In this document: positions 2,779-19,829 of the stretch, piece by piece
Layout: each line of letters starts with the position of its first letter
Numbering within the stretch: the first letter of the stretch is position 1
Assembly (NCBI RefSeq): GCF_006345805.1
Contig: NW_021824294.1
Span: forward strand, 1-19,829
Source of the DNA: Octopus sinensis
Taxonomy: Eukaryota
Direction: 5' to 3'
DNA length: 19,829 nt
Position numbers and translations under genes: made by a program
Notes under the pieces: model-generated
What the model saw: the letters and a program-made list of their open reading frames with translations, nothing else
The model's database searches: none
Told to the model about the DNA's origin: nothing

Positions 2779-3584
2779 ATGGTGGTGGTGGTGGTGGTGG
2801 TGATGGTGGTGGGGTGGTGGTGGTGGTGGTGGTGGTGGTGGTGGTGATGGTGGTGGTGGTGGTGATGGTAGTGATGGTGGTGATGGTGGTGATGGTGGTG
2901 GTGGTGATGGTGGTGGTGGTGGTGGTGGTGATGGTGGTGGTGGTGGTGGTGAGTGGTGGTGGTGGGGTGACGGTGGTGATGGTGGTGGTGGTGGTGACGG
3001 TGGTGGTGACGGTGGTGGTGGTGGCAGTGGTGGTGGTGGTGGTGATGGTGATATGGTGGTGGTGGTGGTGATGGTGGTGGTGGTGGTGGTGATGGTGATA
3101 TGGTGGTGATGATGGTGGTGGTGGTGGTGTGGTGATGTGGTGGTGGTGGTGGTGGTGGTGATGGTGGTGGTGGTGGTGGTGATGGTGATATAGTGGTGGT
3201 GGTGGTGGTGGTGATGGTGGTGGTGGTGGTGGTGGTGGTGATGGTGATATGGTGGTGGTGGTGGTGGTGATGGTGGTGGTGGTGGTGGTGATGGTGGTGG
3301 TGTATGTGGTGGTGGTGGTGGTGGTGGTGGTGGTGTGATGGTAGTGATGGTGGTGGTGGTGGTGATGATGTGATGGTGGTGGTGGTGGTGGTGGTTGTGG
3401 TGATGGTGGTGGTGGTGGTGATGATGGTGTGGTGGTGGTGTGTGTGATGGTAGTGATGGTGGTGGTGGTGGTGATGATGGTGATGGTGGTGGTGGTGATG
3501 GTGGTTGTGGTGATGGTGGTGGTGGTGGTGATGATGGTGATGGTGGTGGTGGTGATGGTGGTGGTGGTGATGGAGGAGGTGGTA
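2779..3584. repeat. (GGT)n/(GGTGAT)n microsatellite
   Basis: About 800 bp of near-pure GGT with GAT/GAC interruptions, read directly. Confidence 0.98.
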
Positions 3585-4124: not shown

Positions 4125-5212
4125 ATTGTGCCTTCAGTTCATCTTTGGTGTCACAAGGAGTTTTGTTGGTCTCTCACTCAATTGTGCCCCACAAATAATA
4201 ATCAAGGGGTTTGAGGTCTGGGGAGTAAGGTGACCAGATGTTAGGAGTGATGTGGTTGCACAAATTGTCTGATAGCAATGACTTGGTTCTCCTGCTTGTG
4301 TAGCATGGTGCAGAGTCCTGTTGCCAGACATAGGCTCTTCCAGTAGCTGCCCTCTTGACCCAGGGCAGCACTACCTCTTCCAGGCACTTGATGTAGGTCT
4401 CTGTGTTGAGTCTGAGGCTGTGTGGGAAGATGAGTGGAGGCATAACGTCGCCATCACTCGTGATCACTCCAAATACCATGATGTTGACTGGATGCTTGAT
4501 TTTTATCACTCTCAGTACATGTTTTGGGGACACAGCATGCCAACGGTTTCTTTCAGTTTCCATCTACCAAATCCACTCACAAAGCCTTGCTCAGCCTGAG
4601 GTTATAGTAGAAGACACTTGCCCAAGGTGCCATGCAGTGGGACTGAACCCATGACATATATGAATTTTTGTTGTCTGAGAAAAACCAAAGCATGTTTGGT
4701 TGGAAGGGACGCTTGGGTTTGTTCAAAAGCTTTGTAGAAGTCTTTCCTCTTGTCCTTGATGGTTTGGGATAAAAACTGGCCCTTTCTCATTTTGTATGCG
4801 GAATATCGAATGTCTTCATGCATTACCTGCCTGATAAAAAAAACTCAGACACTCCCAGGTCCCCTGGTAATGTACCTGATTGACTTGGAGGGATTGTTGT
4901 CAATCATGGCCCAGACCTCACCAACAAATTCAGGAGTTATTTTCTTATCAAAATGATCAGAGTGAGTTTTCCGAGCTGCTGTACCTTCGTAATCACCATT
5001 AGACTCATCCAACTCCTTCCGAATCCTCTGCATGTCCTTAGGTTGACACCCAAATACTCAGAAATGTTTGTATTGGAGCTTCGGGCATGAATGCCAAGCA
5101 GTAGAGGGTGCCCAGTTGACCCTACTATCCTGTGTAGTTGACAAAATCAAAAACAAGCAATGTGCATGCAGGAAATAAAAAAACATGAAATGGTGACAAT
5201 TTACCCATCACA
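4125..5212 (-). mobile_element. Tc1/mariner-superfamily DD37D (maT-type) transposon relic with a fragmented transposase
   Basis: Minus-strand frames give QRIRKELD...MIDNNPSKSIR, HEDIRYSAYKMRKGQFL, WFFSD (D at 4673-4675), WQQDSAP (D at 4315-4317) and SPDLKPLDYYLWG (D at 4201-4203). Exactly 37 residues separate D2 and D3. Frameshifts, stops and a SINE insert are present. Confidence 0.88.
4548..4661 (-). mobile_element. 114-bp SINE family A fragment inserted in the transposase, identical to 9727-9840
   Basis: Base-for-base match read by eye at offset 5179. Confidence 0.9.
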
Positions 5213-5239: not shown

Positions 5240-5462
5240 CTTTTATCTTTTACTTGTTTCAGTCATTAGACTGCGGCCATGCTGGGGCACGACCTTGAAG
5301 GGTTTTATTTGAACAAAATGACCCCAGTGCTTTTTCCTTCTGAAAGCCTTTGTTCTATCAGTCTCTTTTGCCGAACTGTTAAGTTACGGGGATGTAAACA
5401 CACCAACACCAGGTGTCAAGCGACAGTGGGGAGATAAACACAGATACAGAGATACACACACA
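5240..5462 (-). mobile_element. SINE family A, 3' half (5' half at 9718-9840)
   Basis: TTTTACTTGTTTCAGTCATTAGACTGCGGCCATGCTG...CTCTTTTGCCGAAC...AAACACACCAACACC...GTCAAGC matches the first half of 18167-18585 and ends in the central CA/TA microsatellite. Confidence 0.8.
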
Positions 5463-5499
5463 TGTATATATGTATATATAAGTATATATATATATATGT

Positions 5500-7463
5500 T
5501 CTGCTAGGTTCCTCACAGGCAAAGGACAGAGGTACAAGATTTTCTGGGCTGGGAATGAAGGAAAAATTTGCCAATGTCCTGCGTCGTGAGGATGAAAGAC
5601 TTGAGGGGTATTTCGTGTTGCAAGACAGTGTGTGAGAGAGAATCGTGACGTGGTAGGGAGAAAATGTGTTTCGCAAGGAGGACGGTTCACTTGCACTTAA
5701 TGAGGTGCAAAGAGAGAGATTGGAGACGCCACTATGTATGTTGCTGAATGAAGAAAATGAATGGGATAAAGAGAGTCTGCCGAATGTCGACCCAACAGAG
5801 GGACCAGCAATCCGAGTTAACAGTTCCTTAGTAGATAAGGCAATTAGAAGCATGAAAACAGGGAAAGCCCCAGGCCCATCAGGAATTACTGCAGAGATGC
5901 TCAAAATATCTGGTGGTGTCGGCTATAGCTTAGTCACCCGTATAGTTAACCAGGTGATACACGAGGGGGTCATACCCAATGACTGGTGTAGCAGCATAAT
6001 AGTCAACTGCTACAAAGGTAAAGGCGATGCCCTAGAGACAAATACAAAGGGGCATCAAGCTGCTGGATCAGGTATGAAGGTTACGGAGAGGGTTGTAGCC
6101 CAACTAATTAGAGAGAGAGTTACCTTAGATGATATGCAGTTTGGGTTCGTGCCAGGGAAAAGTACTACTGATGCTATATTCCTGGTAAGACAGCTGCAGG
6201 AGAAATACCTAGCCAAAGATAAGCCCTTGTACCTGGCTTTTGTTGACTTGGAGAAAGCCTTTGACAGGGTCCCCCGGTCCCTTATCTGGTGGTCAATGAG
6301 GAAACTAGGGATAGAAGAATGGTTGGTGAGAGCTGTGCAAGCCATGTACAGAGACGCTGCTAGTAAGGTGAGGGTGGGCAACGAGTACAGTGAAGAATTC
6401 CGGGTAGAGGTTGGGGTCCACCAAGTTTCAGTCCTCAGTCCCCTCCTATTTATCATAGTCCTCCAGGCAATAACGGAGGAATTCAAGACAGGTTGCCCCT
6501 GGGAGCTCCTCTATGCTGATGACCTTGCTCTAATTGCTGAGTCACTATCAGAACTGGAGGAGAAGTTCCAGGTGTGGAAACAAGGATTAGAATCGAAGGG
6601 CCTTAGAATCAACCTAGCCAAAACCAAAGTTCTAATAAGTAGGAAGGTAGATCAATCACAAACGCCTTCAGGTAGATGGCCCTGCTCGATCTGTAAAAAA
6701 GGTGTAGGTAGAAACTCTATAAGATGCACCAAGTGTAAGCTATGGACACATAAGAGGTGCAGCAATGTCAAAGGAAGGCTAACTAGGAAAATAGTTTTTG
6801 TCTGTGGCAAATGCTCAGGAGCAATAAACACTGGAAATATGCAGAGACCAACTTCTGCCACGTTCCAGGGAGACAAACTAGAAGTAGTTGATAGCTTCCG
6901 CTACCTAGGAGACCAAGTCAGTAGCGGGGGTGGGTGTGCTGAAAGTGTAACTGCTAGAGTAAGAATAGCCTGGGCAAAGTTTAGAGAGCTCTTACCCCTG
7001 CTGGTGACAAAAGGCCTCTCGCTCAGAGTAAAAGGCAGACTGTATGATGCATGTGTACGTACAGCCATGCTACATGGCAGTGAAACATGGGCCGTGACTG
7101 CTGAGGATATGCGTAAGCTCGCAAGAAATGAAGCCAGTATGCTCCGATGGATGTGTAATGTCAGTGTTCATAATCGTCAGAGTGTAAGTTCCTTGAGAAA
7201 AGCTGAACCTAAGAAGCGTCAGTTGTGGCGTGCAAGAGAGACGGCTGCGCTGGTATGGTCATGTGACAAGAAAGGCTGAAGATAGTTGTGTGCAAAAGTG
7301 CTACACCCTAGCAGTGGAGGGAACCTGTGGAAGAGGTAGACCCAGGAAAACCTGGGACGAGGTGGTGAAGCACGACCTTCGAACTTTAGGTCTCACTAAG
7401 GAAATGTCTAGAGACCGAGACCTATGGAAGTATGCTGTGCATGAGAAGACCCGGCAAGACTAG
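5500..7463 (+). pseudogene. Disrupted RTE ORF (endonuclease remnant, reverse transcriptase, internal PHD-type zinc finger)
   Basis: SARFLTGKGQRYKIFWAGN (5500-5556), KAPGPSG, QFGFVPGKSTTDAIF, FVDLEKAFDRV, GVHQVSVLSPLLF (G>V at 6425), YADD (6512-6523), GLRINLAKTK, FRYLG (6896-6910), AMLHGSETW. Frameshifts near 5605, 5660, 6045/6073 and 7198. Confidence 0.93.
6677..6814 (+). other. C4HC3 PHD-type zinc finger coding segment within the RT
   Basis: WPCSIC-x10-CTKC-KLWT-H-KR-C-x14-CGKC, i.e. C-x2-C-x10-C-x2-C-x4-H-x2-C-x14-C-x2-C. Confidence 0.8.
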
Positions 7464-9030
7464 TCAGGCCATAACCCGTGGCCCCGACCTGGGACGTAGT
7501 CAGTCCTGTGCATACCTTCCTTCTTGTGACACTTATGAAGACCTGTTGAGGCAAGTGAAAATCAAATCAAATCAAAACAAATCAAAATAGATGAACATCA
7601 GTGGAATTGTATTCTTTGTGGTACCAGTGCCGGTGGCACACAAGAAAACCACCAAACGTGGCCGTAACCAGTACCGCATCGACTGGCCTCCGTGCTGTGG
7701 GCACAACAAACACCATCCGATCGTGGCCGTTCGCCAGCCTCATCTGGCACCTGTGCCGGTGGCACATAAAGACACCATCCGAAGACCCGGCGACGTAGTC
7801 AGTCCACCTGTGCATACCTCCCTCTTATGACACTGTGAAGACCTGTTGAGGCAAGTGTGTGACACTTGTGAAGACCTGTTGAGGCAGAGGCAAGTGTGTG
7901 ACACTTGTGGAGACCTGTTGAGCAAGTGTGTGACCCTTGTGAAGACCTGTTGAGGCAAGTGAAAATCAAACCAAATCAAAATAGATGAATATCAATGGAA
8001 TTTGTATCTTTGTGGTTCCAGTACCGGTGGCACACAAGAAAACCATCCGAACGTGGCCGTAGCTGGTACCGCATCGACTGGCCTCCGTGCTGTGGGCACA
8101 ACAAACACCATCTGATCGTGGCCGTTCGCCAGCCTCACCTGGCACCTGTGTCGGTGGCACATAAAAACACCATCCAAAGACCCGGCGACGTAGTCAGTCC
8201 ACCTGTGCATACCTTCCTCTTATGACACTTGTGAAGACCTGTTGAGGCAGAGGCAAGTGTGTGACACTTTGTGAAGACCTGTTGAGGCAGAGGCAAGTGT
8301 GTGACACTTGTGGAGACCTGTTGAGGCAAGTGTGTGACACGCGTGACACTTGTGAAGACCTGTTGAGGCAAGTGAAAATCAAACCAAATCAAAATAGATG
8401 AACATCAATGGAATTTGTATCTTTGTGGTTCCAGTACCGGTGGCACACAAGAAAACCATCCGATCGTGGCCGTTCGCCAGCCACATCTGGCACCTGTGTC
8501 GGTGGCACATAAAGACACCATCCGAAGACCCGGCGACGTAGACAGTCCACCTGTGCATACCTTCCTTCTTGTGACACTTGTGAAGACCTGTTGAGGCAAG
8601 TGAAAATCAAATCAAATCAAATCAAAACAAATCAAAATAGATGAACATAAATGGAATTTGTATCTTTGTGGTACCAGTGCCGGTGGCACACAGAAAAATC
8701 ATCCGAACGTGGCCGTAGCCAGTACCGCATAGACTGGCCTCCGTGCTTTGGGGACGTAACAAACACCATCCGATCGTGGCCGTCCGCCAGCCTCATCTGG
8801 CACCTGTGTCGGTGGCACATAAAAACACCATCCGAGCGTGGCCGTCTGCCAGCCTCGTCTGGCACCTGCCAGCCGCATCTGGCACCTGTGTCGGTGGCAC
8901 ATAAAAACACCATCCGAGCGTGGCCGTCTGCCAGCCTCGTCTGGCACCTGTGTCGGTGGCACATAAAAACCCATCCGAGCGTGGCCGTTCGCCAGCCTCG
9001 TCTGGCACCTGTGTCGGTGGCACATAAAAT
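7445..9030 (+). repeat. Nested tandem repeats in the RTE 3'UTR
   Basis: GACGTAGTCAGTCC-type anchors at 7493, 7792, 8187 and 8535 (spacings 299, 395, 348 bp). Internal ~31-38 bp subrepeat TGACACTTGTGAAGACCTGTTGAGGCAAGTG in variable copy number. ~62-bp units at ~8770-9030. Confidence 0.92.
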
Positions 9031-9203
9031 CACCCACTACACTCTCGGAGTGGTTGGCGTTAGGAAGGGCATCCAGCTGTAGAAACACTGCCAGATCTGA
9101 CTGGCCTGGTGCAGCCTTCGGGCTCCCCAGACCCCAGTTGAACCGTCCAACCCATGCTAGCATGGAAAACGGACGCTAAATGATGATGATGATGATGATG
9201 ATG

Positions 9204-10095: not shown

Positions 10096-10531
10096 GGTGG
10101 TGGTGGTGGTGGTGGTGGTGGTAGCAGTGGTATTGCAGGTGATGGTGGTGGCAGTTGTGGTGATGGTGGTGGTATTGCTGGCAGTTGAGGTGGTGGTGGT
10201 GGTGGTGATGGTGGTGGTAGTTGAGGTGGTGGTGGTGGTGGTAGTGGTGATGGTGATGTTATTGTTGGTGGTGCTGGTTCAATGGCTTTGGTGGTGGTGG
10301 TGGTGGCGGTGATGGTGTTGGTGGTGGTTATGGTGATGGTTATGGTAGTGGCAGTTGAGGTGGTGGTAGTGGTGGCAGTGGTGATGGTGATGGTGATGGT
10401 AGTGGCAGTTGAGGTGGTGGTGGTGGTAGTGGTGATGGTGATATTATTGTTGGTGGTGCTGGTTCAATGGCTGTGGTGGTGGTGGTGATGGTGGTGGTAA
10501 TTGTTTTGGTGGTGGTGGTGATGGTGGTGGT
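10096..10531. repeat. Degenerate (GGT)n microsatellite
   Basis: GGT-rich. The block TTATTGTTGGTGGTGCTGGTTCAATGGCT occurs twice (~10259 and ~10444). Confidence 0.95.
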
Positions 10532-10782: not shown

Positions 10783-11690
10783 GTTTAACGTCTGCTCTCC
10801 ATGCTGGCATGGGTTGGACGGTTTGACATGGAGTTGGCGAGCAGGGGGGCTCTCCGGACTCAAACTGTCCCTTGTGGAATGGTTTCTATGGCTTGATGCC
10901 CTTCCTAATGCCAACCACTTTACAGGCTGTGCTGGGTGCTTTTATGTGTGGGACTGGCACGGGTGTTTTCATGTGCCACTGGCATGAGTGCTCCTCATGT
11001 GTCACTGGCACGAGTGCTCTTCATGTGCCACTGGCACAAGTGCTTTTCATGTGCCACTGATACGAGTGCTCCTCGTGTGCCACTAGCACAAGTGCTCTTC
11101 ATGTGGTTCTGCCATGGGTGCTCTTCATGTGCCACTGGCATGGGTGCTCTTCGTGTGCCACTGGTAGGGGTGCTCTTCATGTGCCACTGGCACAAGTTCT
11201 TATCATGTGCCACTGGCATGAGTGCTCTTCATGTGCCACTGGCACAAGTTCTTATCATGTGCCACTGGCATGAGTGCTCTTCATGTGCCACTGGCACGAG
11301 GTATTTTCATGTGTCACTGGCACAAGTGCTCTTCATGCGTCACTAGTACGAGTGCTCCTCATGTGCCACTAGCACAAGTGCTCTTCATGTGGTTCTGCCA
11401 TGAGTGCTCCTCATGTGCCGCTGGCACGGGTGCTTTCTAAGTTGCACTGGCACCTGAAAGAAGCGATTTTACTTAGCTTGGTGTGTCCTATCAAGCACAG
11501 CAAATCCCCACATCTCTTGGACCCTTGTGATATCCTCAAAGAGGCCCAACATCGAAGATCCTTTCTCAACGCTTCGTCCCGCATCTTCCTGCAACACCCT
11601 GACCCCTGGGCCACTCCCTTTCACAGGACTTTCACAGTAAAGACAGTATTGGCTGTAGTAAGGAAGGTCTTCACTTGTAGCTGCTAGTCA
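10783..11690 (-). mobile_element. Diverged RTE LINE 3' fragment: ORF C-terminus, 26-bp array and terminal domain
   Basis: The minus strand reads ...LRKDL/MLGLFEDITRVQEMWGFAVLDRTHQAK* (stop at 11469-11471), aligning by eye with DLRTLGLTKEMSRDRDLWKYAVHEKTRQD*. The terminal domain at 10783-10935 is homologous to 9030-9180. Confidence 0.8.
10935..11437. repeat. 26-bp minisatellite (~19 units)
   Basis: Unit ~AGTGCTCTTCATGTGCCACTGGCACA, with starts such as 11233, 11259 and 11285. The variant GTGGTTCTGCCATG recurs at 11103 and 11389 (286 bp = 11 units). Confidence 0.95.
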
Positions 11691-11931: not shown

Positions 11932-11958
11932 TATGTATGTATGTATGGACGTGCTTGT

Positions 11959-11995
<37 letters not shown>

Positions 11996-12166
11996 TGTGT
12001 GTGTAAGTGTGTGTGTGTGTATGTATGTGTGTTTATGTGTATGTGTGTGAGTGTGTGTGTACGTGCTTGTGTGTAAGTGTGTGTGTATGTGTGTGTGTGT
12101 GAGTGAGTGTTTGTGTGTGTGAGTGTGTGTATATGTGTGTGTGTGAGTGTGTGTATATGCTTGTGT

Positions 12167-12213
<47 letters not shown>

Positions 12214-12420
12214 TGTGTGTTTGTGTGTGTGTGTATGTCTGTGTGTGTGTGTGAGTGTGTGTATATGCTTGTGTGTGAGTGTGTGTGTGTGTGTGTATAT
12301 GTGTGTATGTGAGTGTGTGTTTGTGAGTGTGTGTATGTCTGTGTGTGTGAGTGTGTGTATGTATGTGTGTGTGTACGTGCTTGTGTATATGTGTGAGTGT
12401 GTGTGTGTGTTTGTGTGTGA
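11932..12420. repeat. (GT)n microsatellite with GA/AT interruptions
   Basis: Read directly. Confidence 0.97.
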
Positions 12421-13038: not shown

Positions 13039-14580
13039 TTAATGTCTGCGCTCCATGCTGGCATGGGTTGGATGGTTTGACCATAAGGCAGCGAGCTGGC
13101 AGAAACGTTAGCACGCCGGGCAAAATGCGTAGCTGTATTTTGTCTGCCGTTACGTTCTGAGCTCAAATTCCGCCGAGGTCGACTTTGCCTTTCATCCTTT
13201 CGAGGTCGATAAATTAAGTACCAGTTACACACTGGGGTCGATGTAATCGACTTAATCCTTTTGTCTCTCCTTGTTTGTCCCCTCTATGTTTAGACCCCTG
13301 TGGGTTGTAAAGAAATAGGTATTTCGTCTGCCGCTAGGTTCTGAGTTCAAATTCTGCCGAGGTCGACTTTGCCTTTCATCCTTTCGGGGTCGATTAAATA
13401 AGTACCAGTTACGCCTTTGGGTCGATGTAATCGACTTAATCCTTTTGTCTCTCCTTGTTTGTCCCCTCTATGTTTAGACCCCTGTGGGTTGTAAAGAAAT
13501 AGGTATTTCGTCTGCCGCTAGGTTCTGAGCTCAAATTCCGCCGAGGTCGACTTTGCCTTTCATCCTTTCGAGGTCGATAAATTAAGTACCAGTTACACAC
13601 TGGGGTCGATGTAATCGACTTAATCCTTTTGTCTCTCCTTGTTTGTCCCCTCTATGTTTAGCCCCCTGTGGGTTGTAAAGAAATAGGTATTTCGTCTGCC
13701 GCTAGGTTCTGAGTTCAAATTCTGCCGAGGTCGACTTTGCCTTTCGTCCTTTCTGGGTCGATAAATTAAGTACCAGTTACGCACTTGGGTCGATGTAATC
13801 GACTTAATCCTTTTGTCTCTCCTTGTTTGTCCCCTCTATGTTTAGCCCCCTGTGGGTTGTAAAGAAATAGGTATTTCGTCTGCCGCTACGTTCTGAGTTC
13901 AAATTTCGCCGAGGTCAACTTTGCCTTTCGTCCTTTCTGGGTCGATAAATTAAGTACCAGTTACGCACTTGGGTCGATGTAATCGACTTAATCCTTTTGT
14001 CTCTCCTTGTTTGTCCCCTCTATGTTTAGCCCCCTGTGGGTTGTAAAGAAATAGGTATTTCGTCTGCCGCTACGTTCTGAGTTCAAATTTCGCCGAGGTC
14101 AACTTTGCCTTTCGTCCTTTCTGGGTCGATAAATTAAGTACCAGTTACGCACTTGGGTCGATGTAATCGACTTAATCCTTTTGTCTCTCCTTGTTTGTCC
14201 CCTCTATGTTTAGCCCCCTGTGGGTTGTAAAGAAATAGGTATTTCGTCTGCCGCTACGTTCTGAGTTCAAATTTCGCCGAGGTCAACTTTGCCTTTCATC
14301 CTTTCGGGGTCGATTAAATAAGTACCAGTTACGCACTTGGGTCGATGTAATCGACTTAATCCGTTTGTCTGTCCTTGTTTGTCCCCTCTGTGTTTAGCCC
14401 CTTGTAGGTAGTAAAGAAATAGGTTTGACCAGGGCTGGTAAGCTGTGGGGCTGAACCACACTGTCAGTCTGATATGGCATAGTTTCTAGAGCTGGATGCC
14501 CTTCCTAACACCAACCGCTCTGAGGGTGTAATGGGTGCTTTTATGTGCCACCAACATGGGTGTCATGTGCATGACACCAG
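13001..14580 (-). mobile_element. RTE 3'-end fragment split by the SINE B array (13001-13083 plus 14422-14580)
   Basis: (CAT)n tail, TTTAATGTC...CCATGCTGGCATGGGTTGGATGGTTTGACCA, resuming after the array with GCTGGATGCCCTTCCTAACACCAACC...GGGTGCTTTTATGTGCCACC. Confidence 0.85.
13084..14422 (+). mobile_element. SINE family B with its body amplified to 7 x 184 bp, flanked by the 10-bp TSD GGTTTGACCA
   Basis: Unit starts at 13135, 13319, 13503, 13687, 13871, 14055 and 14239. TSD at 13074-13083 and 14422-14431. Confidence 0.95.
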
Positions 14581-19036: not shown

Positions 19037-19306
19037 TGTCTGTCTGTCTGTCTCTCTTTCTCTCTTTCTTTCTTTCTCTCTTTCTTTCTCTTTCTTTCTT
19101 TCTTTCTTCCTCCCTTTCTTTCTCTCTTTCTTTCTCTTTCTTTCTTTCTTTCTCTCTTTCTTTCTTCCTCCCTTTCTTTCTCTCTTTCTTGTTTTCTTTT
19201 TTTCCGTCTTTCTTTCTCTCTTTCTCTCTTTCTTTCTTCCTCTCTTCCTTTCTCTCTTTCTTCCTCTCTTTCTTTCTCTTTCTTTCTTTCTCTCTTTCTT
19301 TCTCTT

Positions 19307-19349
<43 letters not shown>

Positions 19350-19668
19350 TTTCTTTCTCTCTTTCTTTCTTTCTCTCTTCTTTCTTTCTCTCTCTCTCTC
19401 TCCTCTTTTTCTCTCTCCCTTTCTTTCTTTCTTTCTTTCTCTCGTTCTCTCCCTCTCTCTTTCTCTCTTTTTCTCTCTCCCTTTCTTTCTCTCTTTCTTT
19501 CTTTCTTTCTCTCGTTCTCTCTCTCTCTCTCTTTCTCTCTTTTTCTCTCACCCTTTCTTTCTCTCTTTCTTTCTTTCTCTCTCTCTTTCTCTCTCCCTTT
19601 CTTTCTCTCTTTCTTTCTTTCTTTCTCTCTCTCTTTCTCTCTTTCTTTCTTTCTCTCTTTCTTTCTCT
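19037..19668. repeat. ~630-bp polypyrimidine (CT/CTTT)n tract
   Basis: Almost purine-free on the + strand. A 70-bp internal duplication is marked by CTCGTTCTCT at 19441 and 19511. Confidence 0.97.
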
Positions 19669-19829
19669 GGTTCTTTCTTTATTTATTCATTTATTTAACA
19701 TCCAATCCGTTGCGTGATGCTTTCAGGCAAGGAGACCGATGGTTGCAATTTTCAACGGAAGGTGAGAATATATTAAGATAAGATGGAAAAAAAAATAAGA
19801 GAAAAAATTAAGAGAGTGTATCTTCTCCT

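Follow-up and report, generated by a model that had tools for sequence, protein, structure and literature searches.

A PHD-type zinc finger within the reverse transcriptase of an RTE-group LINE, with a tentative role in reading the histone H3 tail

We analysed a 19,829-nucleotide stretch of the Octopus sinensis genome (contig NW_021824294.1, hereafter the window), which contains the remains of a long interspersed nuclear element (LINE) whose reverse transcriptase (RT) carries a complete PHD-type zinc finger. The finger is placed between RT motif 6 and RT motif 7, in a loop that is short in the related element BovB, and by sequence, predicted fold and family-wide conservation of its zinc ligands it is a genuine PHD finger. 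The evidence for its identity, position and conservation is given first, followed by the functions that may be proposed for it, the state and surroundings of the window copy, and the comparison with known systems.

The finger and its place in the reverse transcriptase

The longest open reading frame (ORF) that survives in the element encodes a LINE RT (Pfam RVT_1, E 2.4e-26), for which the best sequence matches in the PDB are human LINE-1 ORF2p (79 bits) and R2 (72 bits; both phmmer). The features of this ORF that are relevant to the finger are the following:

5666..7279, forward strand: longest surviving ORF, 537 residues, with RT fingers, palm, PHD insert and thumb
6512..6523, forward strand: RT catalytic motif YADD (Y283-D286), invariant in 75 of 75 aligned family members
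6599..6631, forward strand: RT motif 6, GLRINLAKTKV, the strand that enters the insert
6641..6850, forward strand: whole insertion relative to BovB (residues 326-395, about 67-68 extra residues), made up of N-linker, PHD finger and C-linker
6677..6814, forward strand: PHD core, W338 through C383, with the putative pocket residues W338, V347, S351, I352, W360 and L372
6896..6913, forward strand: RT motif 7, FRYLGD, the point at which RT homology is regained, at the start of the thumb; F411, Y413, L414 and G415 are invariant

The order within the ORF is: GLRINLAKTKV (ending at residue 322), LISRKVDQSQTPSGR, W338-P-C340SIC343-KKGVGRNSIR-C354TKC357-KLWT-H362KRC365, SNVKGRLTRKIVFV, C380GKC383 and F411RYLG. 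The eight ligands (C340, C343, C354, C357, H362, C365, C380 and C383) are spaced C-x2-C-x10-C-x2-C-x4-H-x2-C-x14-C-x2-C, which is the C4HC3 order. The codon of V322 ends at nucleotide 6631 and that of F411 starts at 6896, with 88 residues in between. An initial annotation, made from the letters of the window, had reported this gap and this spacing, and both were found to be exact upon retranslation of 5666-7279. It had also pointed to two aromatic residues, which are W360, two residues ahead of the His, and F378, two ahead of the seventh ligand (Cys7); a second Trp, W338, two residues ahead of the first ligand (Cys1), was absent from it. Translation of the window in six frames yields the generic C4HC3 pattern a single time, none of 200 shuffles contains it, and it is not a chance product.

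BovB, the type element of the RTE clade, was used as the reference, with proteins from Bos, Capra, Dama and Podarcis that were collected with a BovB RT sequence as the query (97-98% identical to database entries). All 120 of the 120 BovB proteins among the matches listed carry RVT_1 only, and BovB has 21 residues without any Cys/His motif between KTKI and FIFLG, compared to 88 residues including the PHD finger in the window family; in BovB the two RT motifs lie much closer together, in line with the initial annotation. The comparison of the window ORF with a Bos BovB protein (P0122) by BLASTP yielded two collinear high-scoring segment pairs, the first between residues 59-325 and 126-405 (32% identity, E 6e-34) and the second between residues 396-512 and 409-525 (E 2e-10), and therefore 70 window residues face three BovB residues. 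The scores of these pairs (122 + 49 bits) are not strictly comparable with the phmmer scores for LINE-1 and R2 given above. At the level of profiles (hhalign, 75 family members versus 15 BovB proteins; probability 100%, E 2e-55, 608 columns) the two families are collinear from the region ahead of the RT up to the last C-terminal motif, with a single gap of 68 columns that corresponds to the finger and its linkers, and the C-terminal motifs RLRWFGH...GRPRKTW pair with LQYFGH...GRQRMRW...DREAW of BovB.

The window element thus resembles BovB throughout its protein, from the pre-RT region through fingers, palm, thumb and C-terminal motifs, and in having a short 3' untranslated region (UTR) with a simple-repeat end; it differs in that BovB lacks the PHD module, and RT identity between the two is about 32%. 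The full-length relatives of the window element (P0247, P0333, P0276 and P0305; 1074-1100 residues) consist of one ORF with Exo_endo_phos (the APE endonuclease), RVT_1 and PHD only, and so display the RTE arrangement of an N-terminal APE followed by the RT, with no C-terminal CCHC domain. The short 3'UTR with its simple-repeat end is RTE-like as well, and its terminal 33-nucleotide motif recurs in units downstream that look like short interspersed nuclear elements (SINEs). Together, these likenesses support the assignment of the element to the RTE group. The alignments further identify the module as an addition in the loop after RT motif 6, ahead of motif 7 and the thumb, and the location proposed by the initial annotation, inside the RT of an RTE LINE, was recovered in this way, between the primer-grip hairpin of motif 6 and motif 7/thumb of a protein that is collinear with BovB throughout.

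The identity of the domain was assessed with Pfam and by structure prediction, and both agree with the PHD assignment that had been made on the basis of ligand spacing. The isolated 67-residue piece scores 28.0 bits (E 2e-6) against the PHD profile PF00628, above the curated cut-off of 24 bits; the whole 537-residue ORF scores 20.8 bits, just under it, and eight homologues score 23.7-30.9 bits, one of the eight just under 24. The AlphaFold2 model of the full ORF, made with the family alignment, has a mean predicted local distance difference test (pLDDT) of 83 and a predicted template modelling score (pTM) of 0.80, with values of 81-95 in the finger region and predicted thumb helices from residue 424, and its top Foldseek matches in the PDB are R2 and LINE-1 ORF2p. 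When the finger was modelled alone, its core was predicted with a pLDDT of 84-90, with strands at 351-353 and 360-362, and the top 20 Foldseek matches were all PHD fingers (BPTF, TAF3, ING1/3/4, Pygo2, ARID5 and PHF13). The crystal structures among them superpose with a root-mean-square deviation of 2.0-2.7 A over 47-53 columns, at a probability of mostly 0.96-1.0. The cross-brace topology is general to PHD fingers.

That the domain is something other than a PHD finger, i.e. a chance cluster of Cys and His, a diacylglycerol-binding C1 domain or a RING-type domain, is effectively excluded. C1_1 (20.1 bits), C1_2 (22.3 bits) and zf-RING_16 (14.8 bits) do appear in Pfam, all sub-threshold, and a few C1 domains are found low in the PDB match lists, but PHD is the top Pfam match and the only one over its cut-off. 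A C1 domain would need two ligands that are lacking here, a His some 12 residues ahead of the first Cys and, as its last ligand, a Cys 7 residues beyond the sixth, and the ligand order is C4HC3, whereas that of RING domains is C3HC4. Chance is contradicted by the shuffles and by conservation of the pattern across 4820 protein clusters.

Conservation and candidate functions

Conservation was followed in three sets of homologues: the best 120 homologues, an alignment of 75 sequences, and 223 family members with the full ligand pattern. The best 120, with named sources Hydractinia symbiolongicarpus, Branchiostoma floridae and Branchiostoma belcheri, are about 50% identical to the window ORF; the insert is present in every one of them and all eight ligands are kept in 118, while the remaining two are each off by one ligand. 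Within the 75-sequence alignment P339, C340, C343, C354, H362, C365 and C380 are invariant, on par with YADD, and G346, V347, G348, N350, S351, I352, C357, W360, L372 and C383 are conserved in at least 90% of the sequences. The 223 members have a Trp two residues ahead of the His in 97% of cases (216/223; 74/75 in the aligned set), a Val four residues past the second ligand in 95%, and a Phe or Tyr two residues ahead of Cys7 in 100%, as the initial annotation had noticed for the window copy. An aromatic residue (Phe, Tyr or Trp) two ahead of Cys1 is found in 90% (200/223), with a His there in 12 more (5%). The commonest ligand spacings in the family are 10/4/14 and 10/4/13.

Out of 1.84 billion, a profile of the PHD finger alone recovered 4820 cluster representatives (50% identity) at E ≤ 1e-3, of which 1102 reach E ≤ 1e-10. 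Among the best 150 of these matches, short ORF pieces from decayed RTE copies predominate, and none provided an independent protein context for the finger: those without RT flanks are decayed RTE fragments or chimeric gene models. Some clusters at 90% identity contain hundreds to thousands of members on megabase contigs and therefore indicate recently active families. The ratio of nonsynonymous to synonymous substitution (dN/dS; Nei-Gojobori) between the window copy and its closest contig (L001, 75% amino acid identity) is 0.23 for the finger, 0.06 for the RT core, 0.13 for the thumb and 0.46 for the two linkers, values that come from a single pair with dS near saturation. The finger is thus, as judged from ligand conservation and dN/dS alike, under purifying selection across a very large family.

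Two kinds of variants were encountered among the homologues. An Asp two residues before Cys1 (SGKDPCGVC) is found in the families P0062, P0073 and P0093, which comprise 9 to 444 nearly identical members located on megabase contigs; if the finger reads lysine 4 of histone H3 (K4), such lineages might prefer a lower methylation state, or this wall of the pocket may be dispensable. In the fragments P0354 and P0355 the segment KTK-linker-PHD is present twice in tandem, and therefore the insert region has undergone local duplication in some copies of RTE. Of the two, P0355 is divergent, with C-Q-K-W-C-H, nearer to the Pygo motif.

The profile search of the PDB with the finger retrieved Pygopus first (E 3e-7), and then PHF23, PHF13, KDM5B, PHF2, Alfin-like 3, TAF3, BPTF and CFP1, which are almost all readers of histone H3 di- or trimethylated at lysine 4 (H3K4me2/3). 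With the single window sequence alone the best PDB match was PHF13. In the structure of Pygo1 with H3K4me2, the K4me2 cavity is walled by W366, Y341 and D352 and floored by V350 and A356, residues A356-L358 pair with the H3 peptide, L382 lines the A1 pocket, and the substitution W366E abolishes binding (PMC2726290). The correspondence of these and other Pygo1 residues with the RTE finger in the HMMER alignment is as follows:

Pygo1 Y341: RTE aromatic residue 338
Pygo1 V350: RTE V347
Pygo1 A356: RTE S351
Pygo1 I357: RTE I352
Pygo1 W366: RTE W360
Pygo1 L382: RTE L372
Pygo1 D352 (pocket lip), E360 and Y379: no RTE counterpart

Six Pygo1 contact positions are matched, and the histone-binding face is thus where the RTE finger has its most conserved residues other than the ligands. 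Put as motifs, the RTE finger shares with the Pygopus PHD (human PYGO1/2; 2vpe, 2vpb and 4up0) the elements [Y/W/F]-P-C-G-[VI]-C, the Val of the pocket floor, x-[SA]-I-x-C, K-W-x-H and G-x-L, and it is these shared residues that form the K4me2 and A1 pockets of Pygo1 (PMC2726290). It differs from Pygopus in the absence of E360, Y379 and the two-residue loop with D352, in a shorter loop between the sixth and seventh ligands, in showing no sign of the rear surface that binds BCL9, and in its charge, which is opposite (+6 versus -6). The relation between the two is one of resemblance, not of orthology.

Because the best matches are Pygopus and other H3K4me2/3 readers and because the six Pygo1 positions are conserved, reading of the H3 tail is the best-supported mechanism. 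Several observations weigh against it: the three Pygo1 residues D352, E360 and Y379 have no counterpart; a few lineages among the 223 members have D, S or N in place of the aromatic residue before Cys1; the Foldseek E-values of the finger (0.02-0.3) are weak, because the domain is so small; and its net charge is strongly positive, +5.9 on average over the 223 members and +13 in the window copy, compared to -6 in Pygo. As an argument against histone reading the charge is weakened by PHF13 and PHF23, which read H3K4me3 and yet have a net positive charge as well (about +3 and +5, as counted on the aligned segments), and it is therefore a caution and not a refutation. The initial annotation had suggested that the RT contains a built-in reader of histone tails, with the Trp before the His at the K4-pocket position of H3K4me readers. 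The placement of the Trp, which in such readers forms the wall between the K4me pocket and the A1 pocket, is borne out by the alignment of W360 with Pygo1 W366; the reader itself gains from the reader-led PDB matches and the six Pygo1 positions, and loses by the three unmatched contacts and the strongly basic character of the domain.

We tentatively propose that the finger binds the N-terminal tail of H3, probably methylated at K4, via a Pygo/TAF3-like pocket and thereby tethers the RTE complex to open chromatin, a proposal, built on comparisons of sequence and predicted fold, to which we give slightly less than even credence. The sequences show that a PHD finger some 45 residues long, flanked by two short linkers, entered the loop between motif 6 and motif 7 in one RTE lineage, which has retained it under purifying selection ever since. 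The finger would use the same face as the Pygopus- and TAF3-type PHDs, with a half-aromatic pocket (W360 and W338 as walls, V347 and S351 as floor) and, beside this pocket, the beta-strand N350-S351-I352 and Leu372 to hold the N-terminus of H3. Binding of the H3 tail, probably K4-methylated, would then tether the complex of RTE endonuclease/RT and RNA to nucleosomes of open chromatin, where nicking and target-primed reverse transcription would be preferred or stabilised. That the finger would in this way steer the choice of insertion sites is something we purely infer. The broader picture, of a large and ancient RTE lineage (at least in cnidarians, cephalochordates and this genome) with an H3K4-methyl reader at the palm-thumb junction of its RT that guides integration, and of a Pygo-like module that was possibly exchanged with the ORF1 of CR1/L2 elements, is conceivable though somewhat doubtful.

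A serious rival to histone reading, if a rather unlikely one, is that the finger grips nucleic acid. It would then act as a basic zinc module that, during target-primed reverse transcription, keeps hold either of the nicked target DNA serving as primer or of the template RNA with its 3' tail, its two conserved aromatic residues stacking on bases as in retroviral zinc knuckles, and would so stand in for the C-terminal domains rich in cysteine that other LINEs have. The same positive charge, with almost no acidic residues, would suit this function, as would the conserved HK[KR]C and other K/R positions, the location of the insert in the hairpin loop directly past motif 6, which is the primer grip, and the fact that Penelope-like elements of Physarum have a SAP domain (putatively DNA-binding) in the corresponding position, after RT7(E) and before the thumb (PMC8557442). 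Yet every close match in sequence and fold is a PHD finger that binds histone tails, the most conserved non-ligand residues are at H3-contact positions of Pygo1, BovB manages without such a module, and PHF13 and PHF23 read H3K4me3 even though their PHDs are basic.

A second alternative, which we consider improbable, is that the finger reads no chromatin at all and is a structural or docking module, which would use the same face to bind some factor of the host or a different region of the RTE protein, or would simply stabilise the palm-thumb junction. PHD fingers are described as binding non-histone proteins too (PMC3241642), several canonical H3 contacts are absent from the RTE finger, and the confidence of the full-length model (PHD pLDDT 81-95, pTM 0.80) is compatible with packing of the finger against the RT. 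No candidate partner is known, though, and a purely structural role would leave the near-invariant surface residues W360, V347, N350, S351, I352 and L372 unexplained.

The window copy and its surroundings

The copy of the element in the window is a dead fossil: it is 5'-truncated and has two in-frame stops and one frameshift, and because it is dead the finger does nothing at this locus. Its remaining parts are:

5500..7587, forward strand: 5'-truncated, inactivated copy of an RTE-clade LINE, with RT, PHD, thumb, C-terminal domain, 3'UTR and simple-repeat tail
5633..5656, forward strand: in-frame stops TGA (5633) and TAG (5654), upstream of the long ORF in a region that still matches the family
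7197..7201, forward strand: frameshift in a short A-run, where the frame moves +1 and the conserved C-terminus goes on in the next frame
7200..7463, forward strand: C-terminal domain RLRWYGHV...GRGRPRKTW...DRDLW in the shifted frame (ORF 7230-7463), with stop TAG at 7461-7463
7464..7587, forward strand: short 3'UTR and tail (124 nucleotides), ending in TGTGACACTTATGAAGACCTGTTGAGGCAAGTG and then an (AAATC)n-like tail at 7559-7587

The family consensus can be matched from about nucleotide 5500 onwards, just past a (TA)n microsatellite at 5462-5499. The APE endonuclease and the whole 5' part of the element are missing, the former because of the 5' truncation. Across the frameshift, ...SSLRK in frame 1 is followed by KLNLRSVSCGVQERRLRWYGHV in frame 2, where the consensus reads S..L..RLGI.......R..RLRWFGHV.

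Directly 3' of the RTE tail, at 7590-8636, there are three or four SINE-like units of about 350-400 base pairs each, which end in the 33-nucleotide motif of the RTE 3' end, TGTGACACTTGTGAAGACCTGTTGAGGCAAGTG (7525-7557 in the RTE copy; six matches in the window, where none were expected); after the last unit follows (AAATC)n at 8604-8636. These units look like a non-autonomous partner that borrows the tail of the RTE element. The window further contains minisatellites at 766-1659, 2120-2588, 8786-9034 and 10953-11453 (periods 26, 62/129, 61/82 and 26, respectively), with a unit that contains GGCACC...GTG and is similar to the body of the SINE-like units of 7590-9160, which suggests that tandem arrays derived from SINEs are scattered through the window. 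At 13135-14424 there are seven tandem copies of a 184-base-pair unit (96% identity), the consensus of which has a stretch resembling the T-arm of a tRNA, GAGTTCAAATTCCGCCGAGGTCGAC, though no tRNA was called there; a search of the window with ARAGORN and Rfam gave no tRNA or known RNA.

Long microsatellites were found as well, i.e. (TGG)n at 2780-3583 (about 271 copies), (GGT)n at 10096-10531 (about 144 copies), (TG)n at 11956-12419 (about 232 copies) and (TCTT)n at 19039-19684 (about 164 copies), and these give rise, on both strands, to spurious long ORFs with a high content of His, Pro, Thr or Val. The Pfam search of neighbouring ORFs gave no match. On the reverse strand at 4174-4563 there is an ORF of 129 residues with ...VWQQDSAPCYTS...SPYSPDLKPLDYYLWG, with more fragments at 4602-5033. 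By eye we take it to resemble the C-terminal DDE region of a Tc1/mariner transposase; it has no Pfam match at E ≤ 0.01.

Known systems and significance

Kapitonov and Jurka (2003) are said to have described PHD fingers in LINEs of the CR1/L2 group. The statement of the initial annotation that PHD fingers in LINEs are known from ORF1 of this group is documented by Metcalfe & Casane 2014 (PMC4120745), who proposed chromatin targeting as their role and stated that no functional study exists. Like the RTE finger, these are PHDs of about 50 residues in APE-type LINEs, with a Pygopus structure as the best match in 8 of 10 subgroups (2vpb_A or 3zpv_A; PMC4120745); unlike it, they are located in a separate ORF1 or at the N-terminus, outside the RT, and in a group of LINEs that belongs to the Jockey superfamily. 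In the Chlamys Penelope-like elements, PHD fingers have been reported as insertions in the RT or in the endonuclease (Craig et al. 2021, PMC8557442). The likeness to the RTE finger lies in the insertion of accessory domains in the RT (PHD, and SAP in Physarum; PMC8557442), whereas the elements are of another retroelement class, with a GIY-YIG endonuclease, and have green algae and Physarum as hosts. Their PHD lies either between RT2a and RT3(A) or within the endonuclease, as opposed to the palm-thumb junction in RTE, and occurs in a handful of families, as opposed to thousands for the RTE finger.

The octopus element RTE-2_OV, assigned to RTE by phylogeny (Petrosino et al. 2022, PMC9115989), has a single ORF, 1109 residues long, with endonuclease, RT and a zinc finger, and a microsatellite-rich 3' end; its length is comparable to that of the full-length relatives (1074-1100 residues). 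The zinc finger was called C2H2 and 'relatively rare in RTE elements' and was left unanalysed in that paper (PMC9115989), and going by this description, on which our comparison is based, it may be the same domain as the finger in the window.

Most public homologues carry PF00628 beside PF00078 in their precomputed Pfam annotation, under the names 'uncharacterized protein', 'hypothetical protein' or, mistakenly, 'ribonuclease H'. In the full-text literature, Repbase and Dfam being outside the search, no paper was found on a PHD finger inside an RTE RT. The suggestion that the finding is new is thus limited by the Pfam tags, the PHDs in CR1/L2 ORF1, the inserts in Penelope-like RTs and the zinc finger of the octopus element, all of which were known, and holds insofar as no paper on the PHD finger of the RTE RT was found.

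Some of the database names of these proteins are misleading. RTE proteins of Branchiostoma and Podarcis are labelled 'ribonuclease H' in UniRef, PHD-bearing RTE proteins are filed under metagenome-assembled genomes named 'Herbaspirillum sp.' (P0035/P0241), and BovB proteins under Mycoplasmopsis arginini, Babesia ovata and Mycolicibacterium malmesburyense (P0126, P0128 and P0149). These LINE proteins with microbial names are almost certainly the result of contamination of the respective assemblies with host DNA.

Beyond LINEs, the chromodomain of chromovirus (Ty3/gypsy) integrases is a chromatin reader that targets the enzyme of a mobile element. The PHD of RAG2 is likewise an H3K4me3 reader on a transposition-type enzyme, and binding of H3K4me3 relieves its autoinhibition (PMC3520747). 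The concept is shared with the proposal for RTE, in that a histone-mark reader joined to the enzyme tethers it to marked chromatin or activates it there. These two differ from the RTE finger in that the enzymes are an integrase and a recombinase, that the reader is terminal or on a separate subunit and not in a loop of a polymerase, and that the function has been shown experimentally. As an accessory chromatin-type domain in a retroelement the PHD finger of the RTE RT is of a kind already known; this instance is apparently undescribed.

The target choice of APE-type LINEs is usually credited mainly to the weak sequence preference of the endonuclease. If the histone-reading proposal is true, a reader within the polymerase would offer a simple and testable mechanism by which LINEs could integrate non-randomly in many genomes of invertebrates and cephalochordates, and the principle of a reader-tethered enzyme, known from chromovirus integrases and RAG2, would extend to target-primed reverse transcription. 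If the finger grips nucleic acid instead, it would add a new means by which RTs hold on to primer or template. In thousands of active families the palm-thumb loop accommodates a folded domain about 70 residues long, which is useful for the engineering of LINE or group-II-like RTs with targeting modules. Either way, the RTE RT contains a finger that is widespread, machine-annotated and conserved as tightly as the catalytic YADD, yet has apparently never been studied.

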